The notes under the pieces are model-generated. The model saw only the letters and a list, made by a program, of their open reading frames with translations, had not been told where the DNA came from and ran no database searches. The translations under genes were made by a program, and so were the position numbers. A stretch of 64,000 nt of DNA from Perkinsela sp. CCAP 1560/9 (Eukaryota; Protista; Euglenozoa: Kinetoplastea). The DNA lies in the NCBI GenBank assembly GCA_965644495.1, contig CBFFSA010000001.1, forward strand, positions 2,232,001 to 2,296,000. Direction: 5' to 3'. This document shows positions 1-42,483 of the stretch, in pieces (the first letter of the stretch is position 1; each line of letters starts with the position of its first letter).

Positions 1-822
1 AAGACTCTCTAACATGTCAGTGAGTTCTACTTTAGATGAGGCAAATAAGACTATATCATCGGCGTAGTCGATATCCGAGATACGCAAATGTTTCTCACCA
101 CGGCTTTTCGATCCTGTAGAATATGTTATTAAACCAGACCCTTTAGTATCGAGCGCTTCTGCCAATATCCGATCGAGTACCATGATAAACAGATAGGGTG
201 CGAGAAAGTCTCCTTGCAGAGTACCATTGGGTCATTATGGTAACACCGTAACTCCGCATGAATGCCACGGCCTGGTGTAGACGATAACTGCGACGTAGAG
301 CAAATGCGTCCGCGGACTTGCATTTCAATGTGTCCACATTTAGGGTGCTCACCACAAACCCCCCTCTCATAGCTTGAATCTTCGGTCTCTGCTCTCGGGC
401 GCCACGCCGAAAACAGGTTTTGCGCTTCCGATTGCGTCCGTGTAATGATTTTGGGAGTATTCCAACCCTGCCGCCCAGCACATGGACACGTTCATCTCTC
501 GGTGGAAACGGGAGGAGCCGTCCATTCATCAAGTCGTACTTAACAAGCCAATTAGACCCGCCAAGCGAAGAATGAACAACCCCTTCCCAAAGTGTAATGC
601 GTTTGCGGTAGGCCATGCGCCAAACAACGGCCACACGTTTTCCAACTCCAAAAACCTTCGACATCTGCAAACGGGCCTGCTGCCGGAGTTTTATTACACC
701 ACCCCTCTGCTTTGGTTGCAAAAAGAGGTTGCCCCGACCACACCTGGCCGTTAGGAGTTTGTCACGAACTTCCAACAAACCATCGAACGGTCCGGAGGCC
801 TCCGCCATTTTGTATCAACGTA
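1..822 (-). mobile_element. Internally deleted copy of the APE-RT-RNase H LINE: 5' end and APE start fused to the RT core; runs off the window start
   Basis: 229-822 is nearly identical to 50362-50955, and 1-229 is nearly identical to about 47496-47724 (LQGDFLAPYLF and YADD RT motifs). Junction ACCATTG/GGTCATTATGG at about 229. Confidence 0.93.
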
Positions 823-3800
823 TTAATACAAAAAGTGATCTCAATACAAAAAGTGATCTTAATACAAAAAGTGATCTTAATACAAAAAGTGATCTTAATA
901 CAAAAAGTGATCTTAATACAAAAAGTGATCTTAATACAAAAAGTGATCTTAATACAAAAAGTGATCTTAATACAAAAAGTGATCTTAATACAAAAAGTCA
1001 TCTTAATACAAAACGTGATCTTAATACCAAAAGTGATCTTAATACAAAAAGTGATCTTAATACAAAAAGTGATCTTAATACAAAAAGTGATCTTAATACA
1101 AAAAGTGATCTTAATACAAAAAGTGGTCTTAATACAAAAAGTGATCTTAATACAAAAAGTGATCTTAATACAAAAAGTGATCTTAATACAAAAAGTGATC
1201 TTAATACAAAAAGTGATCTTAATACAAAAAGTGATCTTAATACAAAAAGTGATCTTAATACAAAAAGTGATCTTAATACAAAAAGTGATCTTAATACAAA
1301 AAGTGATCTTAATACAAAAAGTGATCTTAATACAAAAAGTGATCTTAATACAAAAAGTGATCTTAATACAAAAAGTGATCTTAATACCAAAAGTGATCTT
1401 AATACAAAAAGTGATCTTAATACAAAAAGTGATCTTAATACAAAAAGTGATCTTAATACAAAAAGTGATCTTAATACAAAAAGTGATCTTAATACAAAAA
1501 GTGATCTTAATACCAAAAGTGATCTTAATACAAAAAGTGATCTTAATACAAAAAGTGATCTTAATACAAAAAGTGATCTTAATACAAAAAGTGATCTTAA
1601 TACAAAAAGTGATCTTAATACAAAAAGTGATCTTAATACAAAAAGTGATCTTAATACAAAAAGTGATCTTAATACCAAAAGTGATCTTAATACAAAAAGT
1701 GATCTTAATACAAAAAGTGATCTTAATACAAAAAGTGATCTTAATACAAAAAGTGATCTTAATACAAAAAGTGATCTTAATACAAAAAGTGATCTTAATA
1801 CAAAAAGTGATCTTAATACAAAAAGTGATCTTAATACAAAAAGTGATCTTAATACAAAAAGTGATCTTAATACAAAAAGTGATCTTAATACAAAAAGTGA
1901 TCTTAATACAAAAAGTGATCTTAATACAAAAAGTGGTCTTAATACAAAAAGTGATCTTAATACAAAAAGTGATCTTAATACAAAAAGTGATCTTAATACA
2001 AAAAGTGATCTTAATACAAAAAGTGATCTTAATACAAAAAGTGATCTTAATACAAAAAGTGATCTTAATACAAAAAGTGATCTTAATACAAAAAGTGATC
2101 TTAATACAAAAAGTGATCTTAATACAAAAAGTGATCTTAATACAAAAAGTGATCTTAATACAAAAAGTGATCTTAATACAAAAAGTGATCTTAATACCAA
2201 AAGTGATCTTAATACAAAAAGTGATCTTAATACAAAAAGTGATCTTAATACAAAAAGTGTTCTTAATACTAAAAGTGATCTTAATACAAAAAGTGATCTT
2301 AATACAAAAAGTGATCTTAATACAAAAAGTGATCTTAATACAAAAAGTGATCTTAATACAAAAAGTGATCTTAATACAAAAAGTGATCTTAATACAAAAA
2401 GTGATCTTAATACAAAAAGTGATCTTAATACAAAAAGTGATCTTAATACAAAAAGTGATCTTAATACAAAAAGTGATCTTAATACAAAAAGTGATCTTAA
2501 TACAAAAAGTGATCTTAATACAAAAAGTGATCTTAATACAAAAAGTGATCTTAATACAAAAAGTGATCTTAATACAAAAAGTGATCTTAATACCAAAAGT
2601 GATCTTAATGCAAAAAGTGTTCTTAATACAAAAAGTGATCTTAATATAAAAAGTGATCTTAATACAAAAAGTGATCTTAATACAAAAAGTGATCTTAATA
2701 CAAAAAGTGGTCTTAATACAAAAAGTGATCTTAATACAAAAAGTGATCATAATACAAAAAGTGATCTTAATACAAAAAGTGTTCTTAATACTAAAAGTGA
2801 TCTTAATACAAAAAGTGATCTTAATACAAAAAGTGATCTTAATACAAAAAGTGATCTTAAGACAAAAAGTGATCTTAATACAAAAAGTGATCTTAATACA
2901 AAAAGTGATCTTAATACAAAAAGTGATCATAATACAAAAAGTGATCTTAATACAAAAAGTGATCTTAATACAAAAAGTGATCTCAATACAAAAAGTGATC
3001 TTAATACAAAAAGTGATCTTAATACAAAAAGTGATCTTAATACAAAAAGTGATCTTAATACAAAAAGTGATCTTAATACAAAAAGTGATCTTAATACAAA
3101 AAGTGATCTTAATACCAAAAGTGATCTTAATACAAAAAGTGATCTTAATACAAAAAGTGATCTTAATACAAAAAGTGATCTTAATACAAAAAGTGATCTT
3201 AATACAAAAAGTGATCTTAATACAAAAAGTGGTCTTAATACAAAAAGTGATCTTAATACAAAAAGTGATCTTAATACAAAAAGTGATCTTAATACAAAAA
3301 GTGATCTTAATACAAAAAGTGGTCTTAATACAAAAAGTGATCTTAATACAAAAAGTGATCTTAATACAAAAAGTCATCTTAATACAAAAAGTGATCTTAA
3401 TACAAAAAGTGATCTTAATACAAAAAGTGATCTTAATACAAAAAGTGATCTTAATACAAAAAGTGATCTTAATACAAAAAGTGATCTTAATACAAAAAGT
3501 GATCTTAATACAAAAAGTGATCTTAATACAAAAAGTGATCTTAATACAAAAAGTGATCTTAATACAAAAAGTGATCTTAATACAAAAAGTGATCTTAATA
3601 CAAAAAGTGGTCTTAATACAAAAAGTGGTCTTAATACAAAAAGTGATCTTAATACAAAAAGTGATCTTAATACAAAAAGTGATCTTAATACAAAAAGTGA
3701 TCTTAATACAAAAAGTGATCTTAATACAAAAAGTGATCTTAATACAAAAAGTGATCTTAATACAAAAAGTGATCTTAATACAAAAAGTGATCTTAATACA

Positions 3801-6800
3801 AAAAGTGATCTTAATACAAAAAGTGATCTTAATACCAAAAGTGATCTTAATACAAAAAGTGATCTTAATACCAAAAGTGATCTTAATACAAAAAGTGATC
3901 TTAATACAAAAAGTGATCTTAATACAAAAAGTGATCTTAATACAAAAAGTGATCTTAATACAAAAAGTGATCTTAATACCAAAAGTGATCTTAATGCAAA
4001 AAGTGTTCTTAATACAAAAAGTGATCTTAATATAAAAAGTGATCTTAATACAAAAAGTGATCTTAATACAAAAAGTGATCTTAATACAAAAAGTGGTCTT
4101 AATACAAAAAGTGATCTTAATACAAAAAGTGATCTTAATACAAAAAGTGATCTTAATACAAAAAGTGATCTTAATACAAAAAGTGATCTTAATACCAAAA
4201 GTGATCTTAATACAAAAAGTGATCTTAATACCAAAAGTGATCTTAATACAAAAAGTGATCTTAATACAAAAAGTGATCTTAATACAAAAAGTGATCTTAA
4301 TACAAAAAGTGATCCTAATACAAAAAGTGATCTTAATACAAAAAGTGATCTTAATACAAAAAGTGATCTTAATACAAAAAGTGATCTTAATACAAAAAGT
4401 GATCTTAATACAAAAAGTGATCTTAATACAAAAAGTGATCTTAATACAAAAAGTGATCTTAATACAAAAAGTGATCTTAATACAAAAAGTGATCTTAATA
4501 CAAAAAGTGATCTTAATACAAAAAGTGATCTTAATACAAAAAGTGATCTTAATACAAAAAGTGATCTTAGTACAAAAAGTGATCTTAATACAAAAAGTGA
4601 TCTTAATACAAAAAGTGATCTTAATACAAAAAGTGATCTTAATACAAAAAGTGATCTTAATACAAAAAGTTATCTTAATACCAAAAGTGATCTTAATACA
4701 AAAAGTGATCTTAATACAAAAAGTGATCTTAAGACAAAAAGTGATCTTAATACAAAAAGTGATCTTAATACAAAAAGTGATCTTAATACAAAAAGTGATC
4801 ATAATACAAAAAGTGATCTTAATACAAAAAGTGTTCTTAATACTAAAAGTGATCTTAATACAAAAAGTGATCTTAATACAAAAAGTGATCTTAATACAAA
4901 AAGTGATCTTAATACAAAAAGTGATCTTAATACAAAAAGTGATCTTAATACAAAAAGTGATCTTAATACAAAAAGTGATCTTAATACAAAAAGTGATCTT
5001 AATGCAAAAAGTGTTCTTAATACAAAAAGTGATCTTAATACAAAAAGTGATCTTAATACAAAAAGTGATCTTAATACAAAAAGTGATCTTAATACAAAAA
5101 GTGATCTTAATACAAAAAGTGATCTTAATACAAAAAGTGGTCTTAATACAAAAAAGTGATCTTAATACAAAAAGTGATCTTAATACAAAAAGTGATCTTA
5201 ATACAAAAAGTGATCTTAATACAAAAAGTGATCTTAATACAAAAAGTGATCTTAATACAAAAAGTGATCTTAATACAAAAAGTGATCTTAATACAAAAAG
5301 TGATCTTAATACAAAAAGTGATCTTAATACAAAAAGTGATCTTAATACAAAAAGTGATCTTAATACAAAAAGTGATCTTAATACCAAAAGTGATCTTAAT
5401 ACAAAAAGTGATCTTAATACCAAAAGTGATCTTAATACAAAAAGTGATCTTAATACAAAAAGTGATCTTAATACAAAAAGTGATCTTAATACAAAAAGTG
5501 ATCCTAATACAAAAAGTGATCTTAATACAAAAAGTGATCTTAATACAAAAAGTGATCTTAATACAAAAAGTGATCTTAATACAAAAAGTGATCTTAATAC
5601 AAAAAGTGATCTTAATACAAAAAGTGATCTTAATACAAAAAGTGATCTTAATACAAAAAGTGATCTTAATACAAAAAGTGATCTTAATACAAAAAGTGAT
5701 CTTAATACAAAAAGTGATCTTAATACAAAAAGTGATCTTAGTACAAAAAGTGATCTTAATACAAAAAGTGATCTTAATACAAAAAGTGATCTTAATACAA
5801 AAAGTGATCTTAATACCAAAAGTGATCTTAATGCAAAAAGTGATCTTAATACAAAAAGTGATCTTAATACAAAAAGTGATCTTAATACAAAAAGTGATCT
5901 TAATACAAAAAGTGATCTTAATACAAAAAGTGATCTTAATACAAAAAGTGATCTTAATACAAAAAGTGATCTTAATACAAAAAGTGATCTTAATACCAAA
6001 AGTGATCTTAATGCAAAAAGTGTTCTTAATACAAAAAGTGATCTTAATATAAAAAGTGATCTTAATACAAAAAGTGATCTTAATACAAAAAGTGATCTTA
6101 ATACAAAAAGTGGTCTTAATACAAAAAGTGATCTTAATACAAAAAGTGATCATAATACAAAAAGTGATCTTAATACAAAAAGTGTTCTTAATACTAAAAG
6201 TGATCTTAATACAAAAAGTGATCTTAATACAAAAAGTGATCTTAATACAAAAAGTGATCTTAAGACAAAAAGTGATCTTAATACAAAAAGTGATCTTAAT
6301 ACAAAAAGTGATCTTAATACAAAAAGTGATCATAATACAAAAAGTGATCTTAATACAAAAAGTGTTCTTAATACTAAAAGTGATCTTAATACAAAAAGTG
6401 ATCTTAATACAAAAAGTGATCTTAATACAAAAAGTGATCTTAATACAAAAAGTGATCTTAATACAAAAAGTGATCTTAATACAAAAAGTGATCTTAATAC
6501 AAAAAGTGATCTTAATACAAAAAGTGATCTTAATGCAAAAAGTGTTCTTAATACAAAAAGTGATCTTAATACAAAAAGTGATCTTAATACAAAAAGTGAT
6601 CTTAATACAAAAAGTGATCTTAATACAAAAAGTGATCTTAATACAAAAAGTGATCTTAATACAAAAAGTGGTCTTAATACAAAAAAGTGATCTTAATACA
6701 AAAAGTGATCTTAATACAAAAAGTGATCTTAATACAAAAAGTGATCTTAATACAAAAAGTGATCTTAATACAAAAAGTGATCTTAATACAAAAAGTGATC

Positions 6801-9800
6801 TTAATACAAAAAGTGATCTTAATACAAAAAGTGATCTTAATACCAAAAGTGATCTTAATGCAAAAAGTGTTCTTAATACAAAAAGTGATCTTAATATAAA
6901 AAGTGATCTTAATACAAAAAGTGATCTTAATACAAAAAGTGATCTTAATACAAAAAGTTATCTTAATACCAAAAGTGATCTTAATACAAAAAGTGATCTT
7001 AATACAAAAAGTGATCTTAAGACAAAAAGTGATCTTAATACAAAAAGTGATCTTAATACAAAAAGTGATCTTAATACAAAAAGTGATCATAATACAAAAA
7101 GTGATCTTAATACAAAAAGTGTTCTTAATACTAAAAGTGATCTTAATACAAAAAGTGATCTTAATACAAAAAGTGATCTTAATACAAAAAGTGATCTTAA
7201 TACAAAAAGTGATCTTAATACAAAAAGTGATCTTAATACAAAAAGTGATCTTAATACAAAAAGTGATCTTAATACAAAAAGTGATCTTAATGCAAAAAGT
7301 GTTCTTAATACAAAAAGTGATCTTAATACAAAAAGTGATCTTAATACAAAAAGTGATCTTAATACAAAAAGTGATCTTAATACAAAAAGTGATCTTAATA
7401 CAAAAAGTGATCTTAATACAAAAAGTGGTCTTAATACAAAAAAGTGATCTTAATACAAAAAGTGATCTTAATACAAAAAGTGATCTTAATACAAAAAGTG
7501 ATCTTAATACAAAAAGTGATCTTAATACAAAAAGTGATCTTAATACAAAAAGTGATCTTAATACAAAAAGTGATCTTAATACAAAAAGTGATCTTAATAC
7601 AAAAAGTGATCTTAATACAAAAAGTGATCTTAATACAAAAAGTGATCTTAATACAAAAAGTGATCTTAATACCAAAAGTGATCTTAATACAAAAAGTGAT
7701 CTTAATACCAAAAGTGATCTTAATACAAAAAGTGATCTTAATACAAAAAGTGATCTTAATACAAAAAGTGATCTTAATACAAAAAGTGATCCTAATACAA
7801 AAAGTGATCTTAATACAAAAAGTGATCTTAATACAAAAAGTGATCTTAATACAAAAAGTGATCTTAATACAAAAAGTGATCTTAATACAAAAAGTGATCT
7901 TAATACAAAAAGTGATCTTAATACAAAAAGTGATCTTAATACAAAAAGTGATCTTAATACAAAAAGTGATCTTAATACAAAAAGTGATCTTAATACAAAA
8001 AGTGATCTTAATACAAAAAGTGATCTTAGTACAAAAAGTGATCTTAATACAAAAAGTGATCTTAATACAAAAAGTGATCTTAATACAAAAAGTGATCTTA
8101 ATACCAAAAGTGATCTTAATGCAAAAAGTGATCTTAATACAAAAAGTGATCTTAATACAAAAAGTGATCTTAATACAAAAAGTGATCTTAATACAAAAAG
8201 TGATCTTAATACAAAAAGTGATCTTAATACAAAAAGTGATCTTAATACAAAAAGTGATCTTAATACAAAAAGTGATCTTAATACAAAAAGTGATCTTAAT
8301 ACCAAAAGTGATCTTAATGCAAAAAGTGTTCTTAATACAAAAAGTGATCTTAATATAAAAAGTGATCTTAATACAAAAAGTGATCTTAATACAAAAAGTG
8401 ATCTTAATACAAAAAGTGGTCTTAATACAAAAAGTGATCTTAATACAAAAAGTGATCATAATACAAAAAGTGATCTTAATACAAAAAGTGTTCTTAATAC
8501 TAAAAGTGATCTTAATACAAAAAGTGATCTTAATACAAAAAGTGATCTTAATACAAAAAGTGATCTTAAGACAAAAAGTGATCTTAATACAAAAAGTGAT
8601 CTTAATACAAAAAGTGATCTTAATACAAAAAGTGATCATAATACAAAAAGTGATCTTAATACAAAAAGTGTTCTTAATACTAAAAGTGATCTTAATACAA
8701 AAAGTGATCTTAATACAAAAAGTGATCTTAATACAAAAAGTGATCTTAATACAAAAAGTGATCTTAATACAAAAAGTGATCTTAATACAAAAAGTGATCT
8801 TAATACAAAAAGTGATCTTAATACAAAAAGTGATCTTAATGCAAAAAGTGTTCTTAATACAAAAAGTGATCTTAATACAAAAAGTGATCTTAATACAAAA
8901 AGTGATCTTAATACAAAAAGTGATCTTAATACAAAAAGTGATCTTAATACAAAAAGTGATCTTAATACAAAAAGTGGTCTTAATACAAAAAAGTGATCTT
9001 AATACAAAAAGTGATCTTAATACAAAAAGTGATCTTAATACAAAAAGTGATCTTAATACAAAAAGTGATCTTAATACAAAAAGTGATCTTAATACAAAAA
9101 GTGATCTTAATACAAAAAGTGATCTTAATACAAAAAGTGATCTTAATACCAAAAGTGATCTTAATGCAAAAAGTGTTCTTAATACAAAAAGTGATCTTAA
9201 TATAAAAAGTGATCTTAATACAAAAAGTGATCTTAATACAAAAAGTGATCTTAATACAAAAAGTGGTCTTAATACAAAAAGTGATCTTAATACAAAAAGT
9301 GATCTTAATACAAAAAGTGATCTTAATACAAAAAGTGATCTTAATACAAAAAGTGATCTTAATACAAAAAGTGATCTTAATACAAAAAGTGACCTTAATA
9401 CAAAAGGTGATCTTAATACAAAAAGTGATATTAATACAAAAAGTGATCTTAATACCAAAAGTGATCTTAATACAAAAAGTGATCTTAATACCAAAAGTGA
9501 TCTTAATGCAAAAAGTGATCTTAATACAAAAAGTGATCTTAATACAAAAAGTGATCTTAATACAAAAAGTGATCTTAATACAAAAAGTGATCTTAATACA
9601 AAAAGTGATCTTAATACAAAAAGTGATCTTAATACAAAAAGTGATCTTAATACAAAAAGTGATCTTAATACAAAAAGTGATCTTAATGCAAAAAGTGTTC
9701 TTAATACAAAAAGTGATCTTAATACAAAAAGTGATCTTAATACAAAAAGTGATCTTAATACAAAAAGTGATCTTAATACAAAAAGTGGTCTTAATACAAA

Positions 9801-12800
9801 AAGTGATCTTAATACAAAAAGTGATCTTAATACAAAAAGTGATCTTAATACAAAAAGTGATCTTAATACAAAAAGTGATCTTAATACAAAAAGTGATCTT
9901 AATACAAAAAGTGATCTTAATACAAAAAGTGATCTTAATACAAAAAGTGATCTTAATACAAAAAGTGATCTTAATACAAAAAGTGATCTTAATACAAAAA
10001 GTGATCTTAATACAAAAAGTGATCTTAATACAAAAAGTGATCTTAATACAAAAAGTGATCTTAGTACAAAAAGTGATCTTAATACAAAAAGTGATCTTAA
10101 TACAAAAAGTGATCTTAATACAAAAAGTGATCTTAATACCAAAAGTGATCTTAATGCAAAAAGTGATCTTAATACAAAAAGTGATCTTAATACAAAAAGT
10201 GATCTTAATACAAAAAGTGATCTTAATACAAAAAGTGATCTTAATACAAAAAGTGATCTTAATACAAAAAGTGATCTTAATACAAAAAGTGATCTTAATA
10301 CAAAAAGTGATCTTAATACAAAAAGTGATCTTAATACCAAAAGTGATCTTAATGCAAAAAGTGTTCTTAATACAAAAAGTGATCTTAATATAAAAAGTGA
10401 TCTTAATACAAAAAGTGATCTTAATACAAAAAGTGATCTTAATACAAAAAGTGGTCTTAATACAAAAAGTGATCTTAATACAAAAAGTGATCTTAATACA
10501 AAAAGTGATCTTAATACAAAAAGTGATCTTAATACAAAAAGTGATCTTAATACAAAAAGTGATCTTAATACAAAAAGTGACCTTAATACAAAAGGTGATC
10601 TTAATACAAAAAGTGATATTAATACAAAAAGTGATCTTAATACCAAAAGTGATCTTAATACAAAAAGTGATCTTAATACCAAAAGTGATCTTAATGCAAA
10701 AAGTGATCTTAATACAAAAAGTGATCTTAATACAAAAAGTGATCTTAATACAAAAAGTGATCTTAATACAAAAAGTGATCTTAATACAAAAAGTGATCTT
10801 AATACAAAAAGTGATCTTAATACAAAAAGTGATCTTAATACAAAAAGTGATCTTAATACAAAAAGTGATCTTAATGCAAAAAGTGTTCTTAATACAAAAA
10901 GTGATCTTAATACAAAAAGTGATCTTAATACAAAAAGTGATCTTAATACAAAAAGTGATCTTAATACAAAAAGTGGTCTTAATACAAAAAGTGATCTTAA
11001 TACAAAAAGTGATCTTAATACAAAAAGTGATCTTAATACAAAAAGTGATCTTAATACAAAAAGTGATCTTAATACAAAAAGTGATCTTAATACAAAAAGT
11101 GATCTTAATACAAAAAGTGATCTTAATACAAAAAGTGATCTTAATACAAAAAGTGATCTTAATACAAAAAGTGATCTTAATACAAAAAGTGATCTTAGTA
11201 CAAAAAGTGATCTTAATACAAAAAGTGATCTTAATACAAAAAGTGATCTTAATACAAAAAGTGATCTTAATACCAAAAGTGATCTTAATGCAAAAAGTGA
11301 TCTTAATACAAAAAGTGATCTTAATACAAAAAGTGATCTTAATACAAAAAGTGATCTTAATACAAAAAGTGATCTTAATACAAAAAGTGATCTTAATACA
11401 AAAAGTGATCTTAATACAAAAAGTGATCTTAATACAAAAAGTGATCTTAATACAAAAAGTGATCTTAATACCAAAAGTGATCTTAATGCAAAAAGTGTTC
11501 TTAATACAAAAAGTGATCTTAATATAAAAAGTGATCTTAATACAAAAAGTGATCTTAATACAAAAAGTGATCTTAATACAAAAAGTGGTCTTAATACAAA
11601 AAGTGATCTTAATACAAAAAGTGATCATAATACAAAAAGTGATCTTAATACAAAAAGTGTTCTTAATACTAAAAGTGATCTTAATACAAAAAGTGATCTT
11701 AATACAAAAAGTGATCTTAATACAAAAAGTGATCTTAAGACAAAAAGTGATCTTAATACAAAAAGTGATCTTAATACAAAAAGTGATCTTAATACAAAAA
11801 GTGATCTTAATACCAAAAGTGATCTTAATGCAAAAAGTGATCTTAATACAAAAAGTGATCTTAATACAAAAAGTGATCTTAATACAAAAAGTGATCTTAA
11901 TACAAAAAGTGATCTTAATACAAAAAGTGATCTTAATACAAAAAGTGATCTTAATACAAAAAGTGATCTTAATACAAAAAGTGTTCTTAATACAAAAAGT
12001 GATCTTAATACAAAAAGTGATCTTAATACAAAAAGTGATCTTAATACAAAAAGTGATCTTAATACAAAAAGTGATCTTAATACAAAAAGTGATCTTAATA
12101 CAAAAAGTGATCTTAATACAAAAAGTGATCTTAATACAAAAAGTGATCTTAATACAAAAAGTGATCTTAATACAAAAAGTGATCTTAATACAAAAAGTGA
12201 TCTTAGTACAAAAAGTGATCTTAATACAAAAAGTGATCTTAATACAAAAAGTGATCTTAATACAAAAAGTGATCTTAATACCAAAAGTTATCTTAATGCA
12301 AAAAGTGATCTTAATACAAAAAGTGATCTTAATACAAAAAGTGATCTTAATACAAAAAGTGATCTTAATACAAAAAGTGATCTTAATACAAAAAGTGATC
12401 TTAATACAAAAAGTGATCTTAATACAAAAAGTGATCTTAATACAAAAAGTGATCTTAATACAAAAAGTGATCTTAATACCAAAAGTGATCTTAATGCAAA
12501 AAGTGTTCTTAATACAAAAAGTGATCTTAATATAAAAAGTGATCTTAATACAAAAAGTGATCTTAATACAAAAAGTGATCTTAATACAAAAAGTGGTCTT
12601 AATACAAAAAGTGATCTTAATACAAAAAGTGATCATAATACAAAAAGTGATCTTAATACAAAAAGTGTTCTTAATACTAAAAGTGATCTTAATACAAAAA
12701 GTGATCTTAATACAAAAAGTGATCTTAATACAAAAAGTGATCTTAAGACAAAAAGTGATCTTAATACAAAAAGTGATCTTAATACAAAAAGTGATCTTAA

Positions 12801-30800: not shown

Positions 30801-33800
30801 AATACAAAAAGTGTTCTTAATACTAAAAGTGATCTTAATACAAAAAGTGATCTTAATACAAAAAGTGATCTTAATACAAAAAGTGATCTTAATACAAAAA
30901 GTGATCTTAATACAAAAAGTGATCTTAATACAAAAAGTGATCTTAATACAAAAAGTGATCTTAATACAAAAAGTGATCTTAATACAAAAAGTGATCTTAA
31001 TACAAAAAGTGATCTTAATACAAAAAGTGATCTTAATACAAAAAGTGATCTGAATACAAAAAGTGATCTTAATACAAAAAGTGATCTTAATACAAAAAGT
31101 GATCTTAATGCAAAAAGTGATCTTAATACAAAAAGTGATCTTAATACAAAAAGTGATCTTAATACAAAAAGTTATCTTAATACCAAAAGTGATCTTAAGA
31201 CAAAAAGTGATCTTAATACAAAAAGTGATCTTAAGACAAAAAGTGATCTTAATACAAAAAGTGATCTTAATACAAAAAGTGATCATAATACAAAAAGTGA
31301 TCTTAATACAAAAAGTGTTCTTAATACTAAAAGTGATCTTAATACAAAAAGTGATCTTAATACAAAAAGTGATCTTAATACAAAAAGTGATCTTAATACA
31401 AAAAGTGATCTTAATACAAAAAGTGATCTTAATACAAAAAGTGATCCTAATACAAAAAGTGATCTTAATACAAAAAGTGATCTTAATACAAAAAGTGATC
31501 TTAATACAAAAAGTGATCTTAATACAAAAAGTGATCTTAATACAAAAAGTGATCTTAATACAAAAAGTGATCTTAATAAAAAAAGTGATCTTAATACAAA
31601 AAGTGATCTTAATACAAAAAGTGATCTTAATACAAAAAGTGATCTTAATACAAAAAGTGATCTTAATACCAAAAGTGATCTTAATGCAAAAAGTGTTCTT
31701 AATACAAAAAGTGATCTTAATACAAAAAGTGATCCTAATACAAAAAGTGATCTTAATACAAAAAGTGATCTTAATACAAAAAGTGGTCTTAATACAAAAA
31801 GTGATCTTAATACAAAAAGTGATCTTAATACAAAAAGTGATCTTAATACAAAAAGTGATCTTAATACAAAAAGTGATCTTAATACAAAAAGTGATCTTAA
31901 TACAAAAAGTGATCTTAATACAAAAAGTGATCTTAATACAAAAAGTGATCTTAATACAAAAGGTGATCTTAATACAAAAAGTGATCTTAATGCAAAAAGT
32001 GATCTTAATACAAAAAGTGATTTTAATACCAAAAGTGATCTTAATGCAAAAAGTGATCTTAATACAAAAAGTGATCTTAATACAAAAAGTGATCTTAATA
32101 CAAAAAGTGATCTTAATACAAAAAGTGATCTTAATACAAAAAGTGATCTTAATACAAAAAGTGATCTTAATACAAAAAGTGATCTTAATACAAAAAGTGA
32201 TCTTAATACAAAAAGTGATCTTAATACAAAAAGTGATCTTAATGCAAAAAGTGATCTTAATACAAAAAGTGATCTTAATACAAAAAGTGATCTTAATACA
32301 AAAAGTGATCTTAATACAAAAAGTGATCTTAATACAAAAAGTGATCTTAATACAAAAAGTGATCTTAATACAAAAAGTGATCTTAATACAAAAAGTGATC
32401 TTAGTACCAAAAGTGATCTTAATCGAAAAAGTGATCTGAATACAAAAAGTGATCTTAATACAAAAAGGTGATCTTAATACAAAAAGTGATCTTAATACAA
32501 AAAGTGATCTTAATACAAAAACTGGTCTTAATACAAAAAGTGATCTTAATACAAAAAGTGATCTTAATACAAAAAGTGATCTTAATACAAAAGGTGATCT
32601 TAATACAAAAAGTGATCTTAATACAAAAAGTGAGCTTAATACAAAAGGTGATCTTAATACAAAAAGTGATCTTAATACAAAAAGTGATCTTAATACAAAA
32701 CGTGATCTTAATACAAAAGTGATCTTAATACAAAAAGTGATCTTAATACAAAAAGTGATCCTAATACAAAAAGTGATCTGAACACAAAAAGTGATCTTAA
32801 TACAAAAAGTGATCTTAATACAAAAAGTGATCTTAACAAAAAAACTGGTCTTAATACAAAAAGTGATCTTAATACAAAAAGTGATCTTAATACAAAAAGT
32901 GATCTTAATACAAAAGGTGATCTTAATACAAAAAGTGATCTTAATACAAAAAGTGAGCTTAATACAAAAGGTGATCTTAATACAAAAAGTGATCTTAATA
33001 CAAAAAGTGATCTTAATACAAAATGTGATCTTAATACAAAAGTGATCTTAATACAAAAAGTGATCTTAATACAAAAGTGATCTTAATACAAAAAGTGATC
33101 TTAATACAAAAAGTGATCTTAATACAAAAAGTGATCCTAATACAAAAAGTGATCTGAACACAAAAAGTGATCTTAATACAAAAAGTGATCTTAATACAAA
33201 AAGTGATCTTAATACAAAAAGTGATCTTAATACAAAAAGTGATCTTAATACAAAAAGTGTTCTTATTCCAAAAGGTGATCTTAATACAAAAAGTGATCTT
33301 AATACAAAAAGTGATCTTAATACAAAAAGTGATCTTAATACAAAAAGTGATCTTAATACAAAAAGTGATCTTAATACAAAAAGTGATCTTAATACAAAAA
33401 GTGATCTTATTCCAAAAGGTGATCTTAATACAAAAAGTGATCTTAATACAAAAAGTGATCTTAATACAAAAAGTGATCTTAATACAAAAAGTGATCTTAA
33501 TACAAAAAGTGATCTTAATACAAAAAGTGATCTTAATACAAAAAGTGATCTTAATACAAAAAGTGATCTTAATACAAAACGTGATCTTAATACAAAAAGT
33601 GATCTTAATACAAAAAGTGATCTTAATACAAAAAGTGATCTTAATACAAAAGGTGATCTTAATACAAAAAGTGATCTTAATACAAAAAGTGATCTTAATA
33701 CAAAAAGTGATCTTAATACAAAAAGTGATCTTAATACAAAAAGTGATCTTAATACAAAAGGTGATCTTAATACAAAAGGTGATCTTAATACAAAAAGTGA

Positions 33801-36800
33801 TCTTAATACAAAAAGTGATCTTAATACAAAAAGTGATCTTAATACAAAAAGTGATCTTAATACAAAAAGTGATCTTAATACAAAAAGTGATCTCAATACA
33901 AAAAGTGTTCTTAATACAAAAAGTGATCTTAATACAAAAAGTGATCTTAATACAAAAAGTGATCTTAATACAAAAAGTGATCTTAATACAAAAAGTGATC
34001 TTAATACAAAAAGTGATCTTAATACAAAAAGTGATCTTAATACAAAAAGGGTCTTAATACAAAACGTGATCTTAATACAAAAAGTGATCTTAATACAAAA
34101 AGTGATCTTAATACAAAAAGTGATCTTAATACCAAAAGGGATCTTAATACAAAAAGTGATCTTAATACAAAAAGTGATCTTAATACAAAAAGTGATCTTA
34201 ATACAAAAAGTGATCTTAATACAAAAAGTGATCTTAATACAAAAGGTGATCTTAATACAAAAGGTGATCTTAATACAAAAAGTGATCTTAATACAAAAAG
34301 TGATCTTAATACAAAAAGTGATCTTAATACAAAAAGTGATCTTAATACAAAAAGTGATCTTAATACAAAAAGTGATCTTAATACAAAAAGTGATCTTAAT
34401 ACAAAAAGTGTTCTTAATACAAAAAGTGATCTTAATACAAAAAGTGATCTTAATACAAAAAGTGATCTTAATACAAAAAGTGATCTTAATACAAAAAGTG
34501 GTCTTAATACAAAAAGTGATCTTAATACAAAAAGTGATCTTAATACAAAAAGTGATCTTAATACAAAAAGTGGTCTTAATACAAAACGTGATCCTAATAC
34601 AAAAAGTGTTCTTAATGCAAAAAGTGATCTTAATACAAAAAGTGATCTTAATACAAAAAGTGTTCTTAATACAAAAAGTGATCTTAATACAAAAAGTGAT
34701 CTTAATACAAAAAGTGATCTTAATACAAAAAGTGATCTTAATACAAAAAGTGATCTTGTTCCAAAAGGTGATCTTAATACAAAAAGTGATCTTAATACAA
34801 AAAGTGATCTTAATACAAAAAGTGATCTTAATACAAAAGGTGATCTTAATACAAAAAGTGATCTTAATACAAAAAGTGATCTTAATACAAAAAGTGATCT
34901 TAATACAAAAAGTGATCTTAATACAAAAAGTTATCTTAATACCAAAAGTGATCTTAAGACAAAAAGTGATCTTAATACAAAAAGTGATCTTAAGACAAAA
35001 AGTGATCTTAATACAAAAAGTGATCTTAATACAAAAAGTGATCATAATACAAAAAGTGATCTTAATACAAAAAGTGTTCTTAATACTAAAAGTGATCTTA
35101 ATACAAAAAGTGATCTTAATACAAAAAGTGATCTTAATACAAAAAGTGATCTTAATACAAAAAGTGATCTTAATACAAAAAGTGATCTTAATACAAAAAG
35201 TGATCCTAATACAAAAAGTGATCTTAATACAAAAAGTGATCTTAATACAAAAAGTGATCTTAATACAAAAAGTGATCTTAATACAAAAAGTGATCTTAAT
35301 ACAAAAAGTGATCTTAATACAAAAAGTGATCTTAATAAAAAAAGTGATCTTAATACAAAAAGTGATCTTAATACAAAAAGTGATCTTAATACAAAAAGTG
35401 ATCTTAATACAAAAAGTGATCTTAATACCAAAAGTGATCTTAATGCAAAAAGTGTTCTTAATACAAAAAGTGATCTTAATACAAAAAGTGATCCTAATAC
35501 AAAAAGTGATCTTAATACAAAAAGTGATCTTAATACAAAAAGTGGTCTTAATACAAAAAGTGATCTTAATACAAAAAGTGATCTTAATACAAAAAGTGAT
35601 CTTAATACAAAAAGTGATCTTAATACAAAAAGTGATCTTAATACAAAAAGTGATCTTAATACAAAAAGTGATCTTAATACAAAAAGTGATCTTAATACAA
35701 AAAGTGATCTTAATACAAAAGGTGATCTTAATACAAAAAGTGATCTTAATGCAAAAAGTGATCTTAATACAAAAAGTGATTTTAATACCAAAAGTGATCT
35801 TAATGCAAAAAGTGATCTTAATACAAAAAGTGATCTTAATACAAAAAGTGATCTTAATACAAAAAGTGATCTTAATACAAAAAGTGATCTTAATACAAAA
35901 AGTGATCTTAATACAAAAAGTGATCTTAATACAAAAAGTGATCTTAATACAAAAAGTGATCTTAATACAAAAAGTGATCTTAATGCAAAAAGTGATCTTA
36001 ATACAAAAAGTGATCTTAATACAAAAAGTGATCTTAATACAAAAAGTGATCTTAATACAAAAAGTGATCTTAATACAAAAAGTGATCTTAATACAAAAAG
36101 TGATCTTAATACAAAAAGTGATCTTAATACAAAAAGTGATCTTAGTACCAAAAGTGATCTTAATCGAAAAAGTGATCTGAATACAAAAAGTGATCTTAAT
36201 ACAAAAAGGTGATCTTAATACAAAAAGTGATCTTAATACAAAAAGTGATCTTAATACAAAAACTGGTCTTAATACAAAAAGTGATCTTAATACAAAAAGT
36301 GATCTTAATACAAAAAGTGATCTTAATACAAAAGGTGATCTTAATACAAAAAGTGATCTTAATACAAAAAGTGAGCTTAATACAAAAGGTGATCTTAATA
36401 CAAAAAGTGATCTTAATACAAAAAGTGATCTTAATACAAAACGTGATCTTAATACAAAAGTGATCTTAATACAAAAAGTGATCTTAATACAAAAAGTGAT
36501 CCTAATACAAAAAGTGATCTGAACACAAAAAGTGATCTTAATACAAAAAGTGATCTTAATACAAAAAGTGATCTTAACAAAAAAACTGGTCTTAATACAA
36601 AAAGTGATCTTAATACAAAAAGTGATCTTAATACAAAAAGTGATCTTAATACAAAAGGTGATCTTAATACAAAAAGTGATCTTAATACAAAAAGTGAGCT
36701 TAATACAAAAGGTGATCTTAATACAAAAAGTGATCTTAATACAAAAAGTGATCTTAATACAAAATGTGATCTTAATACAAAAGTGATCTTAATACAAAAA

Positions 36801-39800
36801 GTGATCTTAATACAAAAGTGATCTTAATACAAAAAGTGATCTTAATACAAAAAGTGATCTTAATACAAAAAGTGATCCTAATACAAAAAGTGATCTGAAC
36901 ACAAAAAGTGATCTTAATACAAAAAGTGATCTTAATACAAAAAGTGATCTTAATACAAAAAGTGATCTTAATACAAAAAGTGATCTTAATACAAAAAGTG
37001 TTCTTATTCCAAAAGGTGATCTTAATACAAAAAGTGATCTTAATACAAAAAGTGATCTTAATACAAAAAGTGATCTTAATACAAAAAGTGATCTTAATAC
37101 AAAAAGTGATCTTAATACAAAAAGTGATCTTAATACAAAAAGTGATCTTATTCCAAAAGGTGATCTTAATACAAAAAGTGATCTTAATACAAAAAGTGAT
37201 CTTAATACAAAAAGTGATCTTAATACAAAAAGTGATCTTAATACAAAAAGTGATCTTAATACAAAAAGTGATCTTAATACAAAAAGTGATCTTAATACAA
37301 AAAGTGATCTTAATACAAAACGTGATCTTAATACAAAAAGTGATCTTAATACAAAAAGTGATCTTAATACAAAAAGTGATCTTAATACAAAAGGTGATCT
37401 TAATACAAAAAGTGATCTTAATACAAAAAGTGATCTTAATACAAAAAGTGATCTTAATACAAAAAGTGATCTTAATACAAAAAGTGATCTTAATACAAAA
37501 GGTGATCTTAATACAAAAGGTGATCTTAATACAAAAAGTGATCTTAATACAAAAAGTGATCTTAATACAAAAAGTGATCTTAATACAAAAAGTGATCTTA
37601 ATACAAAAAGTGATCTTAATACAAAAAGTGATCTCAATACAAAAAGTGTTCTTAATACAAAAAGTGATCTTAATACAAAAAGTGATCTTAATACAAAAAG
37701 TGATCTTAATACAAAAAGTGATCTTAATACAAAAAGTGATCTTAATACAAAAAGTGATCTTAATACAAAAAGTGATCTTAATACAAAAAGGGTCTTAATA
37801 CAAAACGTGATCTTAATACAAAAAGTGATCTTAATACAAAAAGTGATCTTAATACAAAAAGTGATCTTAATACCAAAAGGGATCTTAATACAAAAAGTGA
37901 TCTTAATACAAAAAGTGATCTTAATACAAAAAGTGATCTTAATACAAAAAGTGATCTTAATACAAAAAGTGATCTTAATACAAAAGGTGATCTTAATACA
38001 AAAGGTGATCTTAATACAAAAAGTGATCTTAATACAAAAAGTGATCTTAATACAAAAAGTGATCTTAATACAAAAAGTGATCTTAATACAAAAAGTGATC
38101 TTAATACAAAAAGTGATCTTAATACAAAAAGTGATCTTAATACAAAAAGTGATCTTAATACAAAAAGTGATCTTAATACAAAAAGTGTTCTTAATACAAA
38201 AAGTGATCTTAATACAAAAAGTGATCTTAATACAAAAAGTGATCTTAATACAAAAAGTGATCTTAATACAAAAAGTGGTCTTAATACAAAAAGTGATCTT
38301 AATACAAAAAGTGATCTTAATACAAAAAGTGATCTTAATACAAAAAGTGGTCTTAATACAAAACGTGATCCTAATACAAAAAGTGTTCTTAATGCAAAAA
38401 GTGATCTTAATACAAAAAGTGATCTTAATACAAAAAGTGTTCTTAATACAAAAAGTGATCTTAATACAAAAAGTGATCTTAATACAAAAAGTGATCTTAA
38501 TACAAAAAGTGATCTTAATACAAAAAGTGATCTTGTTCCAAAAGGTGATCTTAATACAAAAAGTGATCTTAATACAAAAAGTGATCTTAATACAAAAAGT
38601 GATCTTAATACAAAAGGTGATCTTAATACAAAAAGTGATCTTAATACAAAAAGTGATCTTAATACGAAAAGTGATCTTAATACAAAAAGTGATCTTAATA
38701 CAAAAAGTGATCTTAATACAAAACGTGATCTTATTACAAAAGGTGATCTTAATGCAAAAAGTGATCTTAATACAAAAAGTGATCTTAATACAAAAAGTGA
38801 TCTTAATACAAAAAGTGATCTTAATACAAAAAGTGATCTTAATACAAAAAGTGATCTTAATACAAAAAGTCATCTTAATACAAAAAGTGATCTTAATACA
38901 AAAAGTGATCTTAATACAAAAAGTGATCTTAATACAAAAAGTGATCTTAATACAAAAAGTGATCTTAATACAAAAAGTGATCTTAATACAAAAAGTGATC
39001 TTAATACAAAACGTGATCTTAATACAAAAAGTGATCTTAATACAAAAAGTGATCTTAATACAAAAAGTGATCTTAATACAAAAGGTGATCTTAATACAAA
39101 AGGTGATCTTAATACAAAAAGTGATCTTAATACAAAAAGTGATCTTAATACAAAAAGTGATCTTAATAGAAAAGTGATCTTAATACAAAAAGTGATCTTA
39201 ATACAAAAGTGATCTTAATACAAAAAGTGATCTGAATACAAAAAGTGATCTTAATACAAAACGTGATCTTAATACAAAAAGTGATCTTAATACAAAAAGT
39301 GATCTTAATACAAAAAGTGATCTTAATACAAAAAGTGATCTTAATACAAAAAGTGATCTTAATACAAAAAGTGATCTTAATACAAAATGTGATCTTAATA
39401 CAAAAAGTGATCTTAATACAAAAAGTGATCTTAATACAAAAAGTGATCTTAATACAAAACGTGATCTTAATACAAAAAGTGATCTTAATACAAAAGGTGA
39501 TCTTAATACAAAAAGTGATCTTAATACAAAAGGTGATCTTAATACAAAAGGTGATCTTAATACAAAAAGTGATCTTAATACAAAAAGTGATCTTAATACA
39601 AAAAGTGGTCTTAATACAAAAAGTGATCTTAATACAAAAAGTGATCTTAATACAAAAAGTGTTCTTAATACAAAAAGTGATCTTAATACAAAAAGTGATC
39701 TTAATACAAAAAGTGATCTTAATACAAAATGTGATCTTAATACAAAAAGTGATCTTAATACAAAAAGTGATCTTAATACAAAAAGTGATCTTAATACAAA

Positions 39801-40670
39801 AAGTGATCTTAATACAAAAAGTGATCTTAATACAAAAAGTGATCTTAATACAAAAAGTGATCTTAATACAAAAAGTGATCTTAATACAAAAAGTGATCTT
39901 AATACAAAAAGTGATCTTAATACAAAAAGTGATCTTAATACAAAACGTGATCTTAATACAAAAAGTGATCTTAATACAAAAAGTGATCTTAATACAAAAA
40001 GTGATCTTAATACAAAAGGTGATCTTAATACAAAAAGTGATCTTAATACAAAAAGTGATCTTAATACAAAACGTGATCTTAATACAAAAGGTGATCTTAA
40101 TACAAAAAGTGATCTTAATACAAAAAGTGATCTTAATACAAAAAGTGATCTTAATACAAAAAGTGATCTTAATACAAAAAGTGATCTTAATGCAAAAAGT
40201 GATCTTAATACAAAAAGTGATCTTAATACAAAAAGTGATCTTAATACAAAAAGTGATCTTAATACAAAAAGTGATCGTAATACAAAAAGTGATCTTAATA
40301 CAAAAAGTGATCTTAATACAAAAAGTGGTCTTAATACAAAAAGTGATCTTAATACAAAAAGTGATCTTAATACAAAAAGTGATCTTAATACAAAAAGTGA
40401 TCTTAATACAAAAAGTGATCTTAATACAAAACGTGATCTTAATACAAAAAGTGATCTTAATACAAAAAGTGATCTTAATACAAAAAGTGATCTTAATACA
40501 AAAGGTGATCTTAATACAAAAAGTGATCTTAATACAAAAAGTGATCTTAATACAAAAAGTGATCTTAATACCAAAAGTGATCTTAATGCAAAAAGTGATC
40601 TTAATACAAAAAGTGATCTTAATACAAAAAGTGATCTTAATACAAAAAGTGATCTTAATACAAAAAGTGA
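823..40670. repeat. 18-bp tandem satellite (TTAATACAAAAAGTGATC)n, about 2,200 units, with kb-scale higher-order duplications
   Basis: Read directly. 39,848 bp / 18 is about 2,213 units. Single-base variants recur in the same order in duplicated blocks; occasional 17- and 19-bp units occur. Confidence 0.99.
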
Positions 40671-40702
40671 AAATCCAAAATCCGAATCATTCCGGATCGC
40701 TC
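40671..40702 (-). mobile_element. 3'-terminal fragment of SINE family A, terminating the satellite
   Basis: AAATCCAAAATCCGAATCATTCCGGATCGCTC matches the reverse complement of the SINE-A end GAGCAATCCGGAATGA plus its (TnGGA) tail. Confidence 0.85.
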
Positions 40703-41048
40703 AATGTTTCAAATAATTTGCAGAATTTTGACCCTTCTTTTCCTTAAAAATCTTTCCTATAGCCATCTGGTGTTTTATGAAGCTTTTTATGCAGCAAATC
40801 AGCTTAGAATTTCGAGATCTGTTGAATGCCGAAGGAATGAGATCACAAGCTCTCACGACACAAATTTTATACTCCAGGTTATGCAAGACCTGGGTGCTAT
40901 AATCCGAAATGCTCTGATCATGTTCTTAAACCCTTGGTAGGATGCACCTTGACAGGTTTTGTTTGTTTTTTTGGTAACGAACTTTATCGCAGGGCATCTT
41001 CAGATGCCGTGATTCAGGACTGGCATTCTTTCCTTCCTTTCTGAAAAC

Positions 41049-41427
41049 ATCCAATCCAAATCATTCCGGATTGCTCCGGATGGTCACTGGCAAGCCAGAC
41101 CCTTCACAGACAGATTTGGAAGTTCCGAGGCCGACGTCCTCTACCAGTTTCCGCTTGCCCAAGGCGGCACCAACGTGATGTTGCCAACACGCTGCGTCGA
41201 CGAACTGTACGTCAACACGGCTTACCCAAGAGGTGTAAGCCGGGTAAGGGAGCTGGTTCCCTGAGGGGAGGGTCCGGGACGGTCCTCCGAGTACTGGACC
41301 TATTCGGTTATCAGCCAGCCTCTTAGAGTGAGGCCGCCGGGAATATTGCGATGAGCGGGTTTGAACTCGCCGTCTGAGCACCATGTGCTTCAAACTTTGA
41401 ATTCTTGCCACTCCGCCACCTCCGCCC
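41049..41427 (-). mobile_element. Full-length tRNA-derived SINE family A (about 380 bp)
   Basis: A-box-like TGGCGGAGTGG, B-box-like GTTTGAACTC on + (GAGTTCAAAC in sense), TTTGGA tail; near-identical to the copies at 48447, 49818 and 63335. Confidence 0.9.
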
Positions 41428-41430
41428 TAA

Positions 41431-41545
41431 AGAGTACAACGCTCAGGGTTCCCGAGCGATCGCTCACCTCAGTACTAACTGAGCCTGGCGGTGCTTAACC
41501 TCACAAAGAACAGGATGTGGTGTTTTCACCGTAGTATGGCCGTAC
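41431..41545 (-). rRNA. 5S rRNA gene copy or pseudogene (first few nucleotides missing)
   Basis: The minus strand reads GTACGGCCATACTAC...GAAAACACC...GTTAAGC...AGGCTCAGTTAGTACTGAG...GGGAACCCTGAGCGTTGTACTCTTT. It has the conserved eukaryotic 5S blocks, paired ends and about 115 nt length. Confidence 0.88.
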
Positions 41546-41986
41546 AACCTGCAGGTTGGTGGTTAGATTCCCGCTATCGACAAAACTCGCAACCTGGCGG
41601 CCTCACTCAAGGGGAAGCGATCAGGAGTTCCTCCAAGGCCCATACTCAACCCCGCTCCCCTGGAGGACCGATCTGGAACCGCCGAGCTGAACCAGGCTCC
41701 GGCGCAACCGCTAAATTGCGATCTGCCTACGCAAAGGAGGCTTGAGACACAGCCTAAACGATTCGAGGCGGTTGGACGCCCGTCCTGGTAGCTACGGTTG
41801 CGTAGCCGTTCTCGGGCTGCAAGGCGTCGAGTGCCGTCTTGGAAGGGGGTAGCAAGACAATGAAGGTCAGTGACCTGAAACTCTACCCTAACGGTTGGCG
41901 CTGCAGAGCCCTCCGTGTCTTCTTCTTTTTCTTCTTCTTCATCTTCTTCTTTTTCTTCTTCTTCATCTTCTTCTTCTTCTTCTTCT
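41543..41986 (+). mobile_element. tRNA-derived SINE family B, 5'-truncated, with a (TTC)n tail
   Basis: Homologous to 57429-57961 in reverse; B-box-like GGTTAGATTCC; long TTC microsatellite tail at about 41918-41986. Confidence 0.85.
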
Positions 41987-42129
41987 GCAAGGAATACATA
42001 GATGCATTCCTTGGCAATGTTGTGCCACATGTTTGGTCATAGCCTCTTTTTCAAGAGGTGTTTCGGAACACCTGGTATGTGTTTTCCGTTTCAAGGACGT
42101 TTTCTGTCCAAAGAAAAGCTGTCCAAAAA

Positions 42130-42245
42130 AAGCTTCTGCGGGTTTTGTTCGAAAAAAAATTCGTGCGGTATCCCCCCCCCCACTAGAGCCCCCCCATGGA
42201 CGCCCCCCATGGACCCACCATTTTTTTCATTTTTTTTTTTTTTGG
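42130..42245 (+). repeat. C-run/TGGA repeat module related to 60630-60780 (inverted) and 58934-58990
   Basis: TTCTGCGG..TTCGAAAA..(CCCCCCATGGA)n..CCATTTTTTT is shared with the reverse complement of 60630-60780. Confidence 0.65.
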
Positions 42246-42483
42246 CCCTTTTTGATCTTTTGCACAAAGTTGAGCTTCGGGATTCGGAAGGTCACTTTCG
42301 AGAAGAATAACTTTACAAGAATCACCAATTGTAATAAGTTGATCGTCATTCGTTCGCTTTTTGTACCTTTTCATGCACTCTTCTTGAGCTTCCGTACTGA
42401 CTGAAAAATCTTAAAAAGGAAGACGATCAATGTAGGAAGACTCATAGAAGTATTTTAGTGTGTCTTCTGGATTGCGCTCAGAT

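Follow-up and report, generated by a model that had tools for sequence, protein, structure and literature searches.

A 40-kb satellite in the genome of Perkinsela sp. CCAP 1560/9 consists of repeats of the first 18 letters of a LINE, and its internal pattern of nested duplicated blocks indicates that most of its length arose stepwise by DNA-level amplification after insertion, rather than in one burst of reverse transcription. The satellite lies in the 64,000-nt stretch analysed here (the window), where 2,214 units (823–40670) abut the 5′ end of a minus-strand LINE. A second copy of the LINE in the window has the same junction with only 1.94 units.

The two LINE copies and their junctions

The earlier note described an identical junction at both LINE copies, with about 2 units in one and about 2,200 in the other, and this observation was confirmed. 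On the plus strand, CCGCCATTTTGTATCAACGTA is followed by TTAATACAAAAAGTGATC at 802–840 and at 50935–50973. TRF gave a period of 18 with 2213.9 copies, 96% matches and no indels for 823–40670, and 1.9 copies for 50956–50990. The LINE ORF is on the minus strand, with its ATG at 808–806 in copy A and 50941–50939 in copy B, so that 14 nt (809–822) separate it from the first unit. The plus strand is therefore the first-strand cDNA sense, as the note had stated.

Copy A (1–822, minus strand, subfamily 1) is the 5′ part of a LINE whose ORF starts at 808. It has an internal deletion of about 2.6 kb at window position 229 relative to copy B and is a dead copy; its 3′ end, a (TTG)n tail, lies about 2.08 kb before the first base of the window. 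Copy B (46049–50955, minus strand, subfamily 1) carries APE, RT and RNase H pieces with frameshifts and two SINE insertions (48448–48824 and 49818–50194), and lacks its last 677 bp. Its 1.94 units (50956–50990, plus strand) are followed by unrelated flank. The distal flank of the large array (40671–41052, minus strand) starts with a diverged copy of the local SINE's 3′ tail motif.

Looking at a possible tandem duplication of copies A and B, we found that the 3′ flank of copy A matches window 41053–42429 from the exact 3′ junction onward. However, this sequence belongs to a repeat with 12 or more copies whose other members run across this point, and the 5′ flanks of A and B also differ; a tandem duplication is neither established nor excluded by these observations.

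RNA folding predicted a hairpin at 808–833 (minus strand), in which the last 11 nt of the LINE-proximal unit (823–833) pair with the 11 nt that end at the A of the AUG (808–818), closing a UACG loop (819–822). The predicted hairpin is kept in subfamily 2 and, with one compensatory A-U to U-A change, in the family of L044. An Rfam scan of window 500–900 gave no ribozyme match at E-values up to 10, although divergent HDV-like folds can escape such a scan.

The repeat belongs to the element

The element is an APE-type non-LTR retrotransposon with RNase H. The intact 1,433-aa ORF on C34 (C numbers denote contigs of the assembly) contains Exo_endo_phos at 171–373, RVT_1 at 665–926 and RNase_H at 1150–1293, and a hairpin plus a (TTG)n tail is present in all intact 3′ ends. 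In a homology search, the nearest proteins were metagenomic ones at 39–50% identity.

To ask whether the 18-mer is part of the LINE or of its target, we collected the LINE junctions and the arrays in the 21-Mb assembly. Eleven 5′ junctions, in two subfamilies that are 81–84% identical, carry from under 1 to 2,214 units. The unit variant follows the subfamily: subfamily 1 always carries GTGATC units and subfamily 2 GTGGTC units. A target-site duplication (TSD) of 13–14 bp encloses 235 units plus LINE on C34, and one of 10–12 bp encloses 1 unit plus LINE on C29. No TSD was found for copies A, C3 or C26, where only 6–7-nt matches lie away from the junctions. The 3′ flanks of A, C3, C34, C22, C26 and C29 carry no units. 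Counts account for essentially all arrays in the assembly; each array of 35 or more units has the LINE at the same end or is cut there by a contig end, and only a 7.3-unit orphan on C2 lacks a LINE. Relatives at 39–45% protein identity in four metagenome contigs also start with 18–19-nt repeats, although their unit sequences differ.

Two apparent cases were rejected. C22 is not an independent locus, because it equals C34 through the flank, the array and the first 671 nt of the LINE. C86 does not have a 5-nt end, because its array is split by a roughly 1-kb element with terminal inverted repeats.

Site-specific LINEs that target simple repeats exist, and this LINE always sits at an array edge. 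Nevertheless, insertion into a pre-existing satellite, with the units as target sequence or 5′ carry-over, is rejected: no units were found at the 3′ flanks, the TSDs are made of unique sequence and lie outside the array, the unit variant follows the LINE subfamily, and copies with 1 unit or less sit in unrelated flanks.

Block structure of the 40-kb array

The array has the consensus TTAATACAAAAAGTGATC (RNA sense GAUCACUUUUUGUAUUAA). Of its 2,214 units, 1,625 are perfect. We found 46 block pairs that share 8 or more ordered variant units, the best sharing 43 variants over 169 units at a lag of 3,330 bp, whereas shuffled unit order gave at most 3–6 shared variants. These nested blocks of 0.4–3 kb cover 1,947 of 2,214 units (88%). 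Block pairs differ by 0 to about 10 units per 100, so duplication happened at different times. The 650 substitutions in the array reduce to 54 unit types, 12 of them seen once, while about 180 independent changes would be expected if 40 kb had aged like the body of copy A (0.45% private).

The earlier note inferred that an RT reaching an RNA end with about 2 units could realign and recopy it, as telomerase does, and gave DNA-level expansion as one alternative. This interpretation is only partly supported. The satellite is an expansion of the LINE's own 5′ terminus, and the note's alternative explains most of the 40 kb. The identical junction with 1.94 and 2,214 units and the cDNA polarity would suit telomerase-like recopying, but it has not been shown, and the writing of the whole array in one retrotransposition event is very unlikely, since recopying a template of 2 units or fewer gives identical units with no higher-order order.

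We also considered whether the length or structure of the array is an assembly artefact. Two other arrays end contigs (C45, C79), and the identity of C22 and C34 up to 671 nt into the LINE, followed by divergence, suggests an assembly chimera or ectopic exchange. Against this, the window array has clean, unique junctions on both sides within one 4.1-Mb contig, its variant-unit patterns are coherent, and 18-mer words are extremely deep in four public runs. A 69-nt de Bruijn contig from public run X1 bridges a junction of this type with 3 differing letters, one of them the subfamily-2 base at 815, so it may come from another copy; such short-read contigs bear on the junction but not on the 40-kb continuity or on RNA ends. 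We regard an artefact as unlikely.

Arrays at other loci

Smaller arrays also show block duplication, with 10- and 14-unit lags on C103, a 71-unit lag on C26 and a run of 24 identical 19-mers on C3. The C34 array has no substitution in 4.2 kb, against about 9–12 expected, although its LINE has about 0.2–0.3% private substitutions in a star-like family. The array is purer than its LINE, so it is not a frozen product of the insertion event, although array purity could be inflated by assembly polishing. Unit counts are spread log-uniformly: 0.7, 0.9, 1, 1, 1.9, about 4–5, 7, 34, 42, 87, 181, 235, at least 379, about 955, and 2,214. The arrays on C26 and C45 share four variant units in the same order but have different distal junctions, so arrays can be inherited between loci.

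Other observations sit less easily with growth in DNA alone. Young copies about 99% identical to each other already carry 181 to about 955 nearly pure units, whereas the old copy B stayed at 1.94, so DNA-only growth would have to be fast and would need a multi-unit seed. Outer ends of arrays fall within 2 nt of the unit boundary (phase 16–18) in 8 of 14 independent cases (binomial p about 0.004 for 7 of 14), the rest lying at phases 4, 10 and 13; the clustering would also fit recopying up to a fixed RNA end. Distal runs of a variant unit on C3 and C79, and a long pure distal part on C45, fit recopying of a terminal unit.

Origin and growth of the arrays

We favour, with moderate confidence, an explanation in which the 18-mer is the 5′ leader of a single-ORF LINE that carries it in variable copy number. 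In this view, the RNA would start at or near the unit boundary (GAYCAC...), and the last unit would pair with the 11 nt that end at the A of the AUG. New copies would receive from a fraction of one leader to many leaders from their template RNA, because array-bearing source copies would be transcribed through their arrays. Once two or more units are in the DNA, the array would behave as an unstable minisatellite, in which unequal exchange or replication slippage duplicates blocks of units, so that growth is multiplicative. In the window, this process would have turned the leader array of a now dead, internally deleted copy into a 40-kb satellite. Our data establish that the repeat belongs to the element, the block-duplication architecture and turnover after insertion, whereas multi-unit template RNAs and the DNA mechanism itself are inferred; no RNA data show multi-leader transcripts.

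A more tentative possibility is that reverse transcription seeds the arrays. When the RT reaches the 5′ end of an RNA with one leader plus an overlap, the freed cDNA end would re-anneal to an inner leader, on the same or another RNA, and copy the terminal leader again, resembling a repeated strong-stop transfer. This would write tens to hundreds of units at insertion, with later enlargement by DNA-level duplication. In addition to the outer ends described above, large, almost pure arrays lie inside TSDs of young copies, and the extra T of the 19-mer variants sits exactly at the unit boundary, these variants lying distally on C3 and C79. The 18–19-nt period is kept in the distant relatives, and (TTG)n tail length varies among copies that are 99% identical, so this RT probably slips at the 3′ end. 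A template jump between terminal repeats, proposed for TART, offers a precedent idea (PMC1636488). On the other hand, the purity of the C34 array relative to its LINE speaks against this reading, and the ordered variants shared by C26 and C45 lie 51–72 units in, which de novo recopying of a terminal unit cannot give. Sub-block duplications inside small arrays need multi-unit realignment, the size spread is log-uniform rather than geometric, and there is no direct RNA or enzymatic evidence. In its strongest form, which is equally tentative, this LINE clade would write satellites: its RNase H-bearing RT, on reaching the 18-nt leader, would repeatedly transfer the freed cDNA end to another leader and recopy it, creating arrays of tens to hundreds of units at each insertion, DNA-level duplication would only finish the job, and the conserved period would reflect the enzyme (speculatively, the polymerase-to-RNase H distance) rather than descent.

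Comparison with known systems

Satellites derived from tandem repeats in transposable-element UTRs have been reviewed (PMC9659126), for example PisTR-A from the Ogre 3′ UTR and ENSAT1 from the En/Spm 5′ UTR. As here, a short tandem repeat of a mobile element is amplified in place into a long array by DNA-level processes. Here, however, the source is the extreme 5′ leader of a LINE, the unit is only 18 nt, arrays stay attached to the element inside its TSD, and expansion recurs at most loci. The table in the review lists LINE-derived satellites from ORF2 or the 3′ UTR, not from a 5′ leader, and a full-text literature search for the unit sequence found nothing.

Mouse L1 5′ UTR monomers are also tandem units at the 5′ end of a LINE, with variable number between copies and partial outermost units, but they are promoter modules of about 200 bp numbering a few to about a dozen, against 18-nt units numbering up to thousands. 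Drosophila TART likewise has a repeated sequence at the 5′ end of a non-LTR element, with the idea that the RT jumps between repeats to add 5′ sequence (PMC1636488); it has one 5′ and one 3′ direct repeat of hundreds of bp, and no tandem array or satellite. Telomerase, and RT slippage at microsatellite 3′ tails of LINEs, copy a short RNA template reiteratively, and the (TTG)n tail of this element varies between near-identical copies. Reiteration at the RNA 5′ end is not shown here, and the 40-kb array bears the marks of DNA-level duplication. LINEs whose 5′ end is set by a self-cleaving ribozyme (R2, L1Tc) share a defined RNA 5′ end, which is inferred here, and a structured leader next to the start codon, which is predicted here, but no Rfam ribozyme was matched in the region scanned.

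Satellite birth is usually reconstructed long after the event. Here, one low-copy LINE family shows the whole series in one genome, from a single 18-nt leader to a 40-kb satellite, with arrays still attached to dated, TSD-bounded insertions. This makes the rate and mode of satellite growth measurable, and makes it directly testable whether a retrotransposon's own RT can seed tandem DNA. The 18–19-nt leader repeat and, in the closer families, a predicted hairpin next to the start codon are conserved across a clade, which points to an undescribed 5′-end function in these elements.

Identity of the satellite and of the adjacent element

The window holds an 18-bp tandem array from 823 to 40670, for which Tandem Repeats Finder (TRF) reported a period of 18, 2213.9 copies, 96% matches and no indels. 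The same 18-mer occurs 1.9 times at 50956-50990. Both arrays start right after the same sequence, ...CCGCCATTTTGTATCAACGTA, which is the reverse complement of the start of a LINE ORF. The ATG lies at 808-806 in copy A and at 50941-50939 in copy B, 14 nt from the first unit. The observation made in the earlier note, that two LINE copies share one junction and continue into about 2 and about 2,200 units, respectively, was confirmed; its coordinates, counts and strand logic are all correct.

Copy B (46049-50955, minus strand) carries APE, RT and RNase H pieces, but is broken by frameshifts and by two SINE insertions (48448-48824 and 49818-50194) and lacks its last 677 bp. Copy A (1-822, continuing about 2.08 kb before the first base of the window) has a 2.6-kb internal deletion that removes most of the endonuclease and part of the RT, and is a dead copy. 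An intact relative on contig C34 of the same assembly encodes a single 1,433-aa protein with Exo_endo_phos, RVT_1 and RNase_H domains. All intact 3' ends finish with a short hairpin and a (TTG)n tail, the length of which differs between copies that are 99% identical.

No recognisable target-site duplication (TSD) was found for copy A. Its 3' flank (C1:2229570-2229926, 5' of the window) starts, at the exact junction with the LINE tail, a 1.37-kb sequence that is 96% identical to the window from 42429 down to 41053, a region 3.6 kb beyond the truncated 3' end of copy B. In at least 12 other genomic copies this sequence runs on across the same point, and one contig (C18) holds it as a 512-bp tandem array, so that the 3' junction of copy A lies inside a multi-copy repeat; the relation between copies A and B remains unexplained.

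The neighbourhood contains further repeats. A 5S rRNA match (73 bits; 41431-41547, minus strand) lies directly upstream, in RNA sense, of a copy (41053-41426) of the roughly 375-bp SINE body that is scattered through the window. In addition to the two SINEs in copy B, a copy was found at 63335-63709, and partial copies at 43005-43146 and 51106-51256. The match may represent a 5S-headed SINE or a 5S gene with a SINE inserted beside it. Other tandem repeats at 44283-44723, 59341-60033 and 60646-60716 (232 bp, 344 bp, and GGGGGGTCCAGGG times 5) belong to repeats shared between 44.2-45.6 kb and 59.2-60.3 kb in inverted orientation. The G-rich 13-mer motif also occurs in a metagenome contig (L044).

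The 18-mer belongs to the LINE and not to its target

To ask whether the repeat is part of the element or of its insertion site, we compared the eleven 5' junctions of this LINE in the available assembly (21 Mb, 110 contigs). They fall into two subfamilies that are 81-84% identical. In subfamily 1, with GTGATC units, window copy A carries 2,214 units, window copy B 1.94 and the copy on contig C3 about 34. In subfamily 2, with GTGGTC units, the 5' ends carry 0.7 units on C39, 0.9 on C17, 1.0 on C29, about 4-5 on C86, 42 on C103, 181 on C26 and 235 on C34. The short array on C86 is split by a roughly 1-kb element with terminal inverted repeats (GCGGTGGTTGT...), which lies on the reverse strand about 5-1040 nt from the LINE junction (in extracted sequence L030), apparently at a TTAA in the unit.

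The eleventh junction, on C22, is not an independent locus. C22 and C34 are identical over 5.8 kb of flank, the 235-unit array and the first 671 nt of the LINE (sequences L020-L023), after which they differ at 35 positions and in their 3' flanks. This is an assembly chimera or an ectopic exchange between LINE copies. A contig from a public run (X2), matched at window position 840, continues after exactly one unit into unrelated sequence, and is either a further single-leader copy absent from the 21-Mb assembly or a polymorphic insertion.

The unit variant follows the LINE subfamily, so the units are copied with the element. On C34, a 13-14-bp duplication of unique sequence flanks the 235 units plus the LINE, and on C29 a 10-12-bp duplication flanks exactly one unit plus the LINE. 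None of the six readable 3' flanks contains the repeat. Word counts showed that the known loci, together with two arrays cut by contig ends (C45 at about 955 units and C79 at 379 or more), account for essentially all 18-mer repeats in the assembly. Every array of 35 or more units has the LINE at the same end, or is cut there. The only orphan is an array of 7.3 units of the subfamily-1 variant on C2 (C2:1483201-1483345; positions 1-145 of extracted sequence L038), which has no LINE and is followed on the LINE side by a T-run (read in RNA sense); it may be a deletion product or a non-autonomous element that shares the leader. Insertion into a pre-existing satellite, which the earlier note had listed as an alternative, is therefore rejected, and the central idea of that note, that the satellite is an expanded LINE 5' terminus, holds.

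Leader repeats in related elements

Proteins 39-45% identical to the RT region of this LINE come from metagenome contigs. Four of the six contigs examined begin with, or contain, tandem repeats of 18-19 nt next to the start codon: L040 has at least 6 units of AAAAGATTGTTTTAAAGG, L043 at least 3 units of GTTCATTGTTTTTAAGAT, L041 about 1.5 units of a 19-mer, and L044, which may come from the same or a very near organism, 87 units of ACCACTTTTTGTTTTAAG. L042 shows no 5' repeat. The closest hit (P0001, 50% identity; L039, 3500-6015) is a 5'-truncated copy inside a 177-bp satellite that is present in both orientations, and is uninformative on this point.

In the predicted RNA fold of the window element, the last 11 nt of the proximal unit pair with the 11 nt that end at the A of the AUG. 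This hairpin is kept in subfamily 2, and in the L044 family it is kept with one compensatory A-U to U-A change. An Rfam scan of window 500-900 at E values up to 10, which divergent HDV-like folds can escape, matched no known ribozyme.

The 40-kb array consists of nested duplicated blocks

To investigate how 40 kb of repeat arose, we parsed the array as assembled into 2,214 units, of which 1,625 are perfect and 589 are variants. The variants are not scattered at random. There are 46 pairs of blocks that share eight or more variant units in the same order; the best pair covers 169 units and shares 43 variants with 2 mismatching units, 3,330 bp apart, and others have lags of 208, 93, 118 and 325 units. 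These blocks cover 1,947 of the 2,214 units, whereas twenty shuffles of unit order never gave more than 6 shared variants. Block pairs differ by 0 to about 10 units per 100, and blocks are nested, which signifies that duplication happened many times over a long period. The 650 substitutions in the array reduce to 54 unit types, only 12 of them seen once, while about 180 independent changes would be expected if 40 kb had aged like the body of copy A (0.45% private changes).

An RT recopying one or two terminal units gives identical units with no higher-order order, and one insertion is one event. Most of this array was therefore made after insertion by DNA-level block duplication (unequal exchange or replication slippage), next to a dead LINE copy. 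The interpretation of the earlier note is only partly supported: its proposal that an RT realigning on an RNA 5' end of about two units could recopy it as telomerase does is not supported as the origin of the about 2,200 units. That the repeat belongs to the element, that the array is built of duplicated blocks and that it has turned over since insertion is shown by the sequence data; the DNA-level process that duplicated the blocks, and template RNAs with several leaders, are inferred, and a contribution of reverse transcription is only possible.

Younger arrays and a possible contribution of reverse transcription

The younger arrays also show block duplication where they have variants, with lags of 10 and 14 units on C103, a lag of 71 units on C26, and a run of 24 identical 19-mers on C3. 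Subfamily 2 has a star-like tree with 0.2-0.5% private changes per copy, but the 4.2-kb array on C34 has no substitution where 9-12 are expected; this array has been homogenised or enlarged since insertion. The arrays on C26 and C45 share four variant units with the same spacing (15, 1, 5), but only C26 has its distal junction. Arrays can therefore pass between loci, through RNA or through DNA, which does not fit de novo recopying of a terminal unit. Unit counts are spread evenly on a log scale from 1 to 2,214, as multiplicative growth predicts.

However, several facts still favour a contribution of the RT. Copies only 0.2-0.5% diverged already carry 181 to about 955 units, while the old copy B stayed at 1.94, so that a multi-unit seed would be needed. 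Outer ends of arrays and of short copies lie within 2 nt of the unit boundary in 8 of 14 independent cases (for 7 of 14, the binomial p is 0.004). The extra T of the 19-mer variants sits at that boundary, and these variants are distal on C3 and C79. The period of 18-19 nt is conserved although the unit sequences differ, and 5' truncation inside the body is rare, at about 2 of 10 copies. These facts fit reiterated strand transfer on the leader, but fit equally well with RNAs that carry several leaders and are processed at unit boundaries. Seeding of the arrays by the RT remains a tentative possibility, which we consider less likely than not.

Comparison with known satellites

Satellites born from tandem repeats in the untranslated regions of transposable elements are well documented (PMC9659126). 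The table of that review lists LINE-derived satellites from ORF2 or the 3' UTR, not from a 5' leader, and a full-text literature search for the unit sequence found nothing. The monomers of mouse L1 are a looser analogue, with roughly 200-bp units and few copies. A template jump between the terminal repeats of TART has been proposed as a way to add 5' sequence (PMC1636488). The satellite described here thus differs from the listed LINE-derived cases in its origin from a 5' leader, and would be categorically new only if writing of the arrays by the RT were shown. The structure of the arrays argues that DNA-level amplification is at least a major part of their growth.
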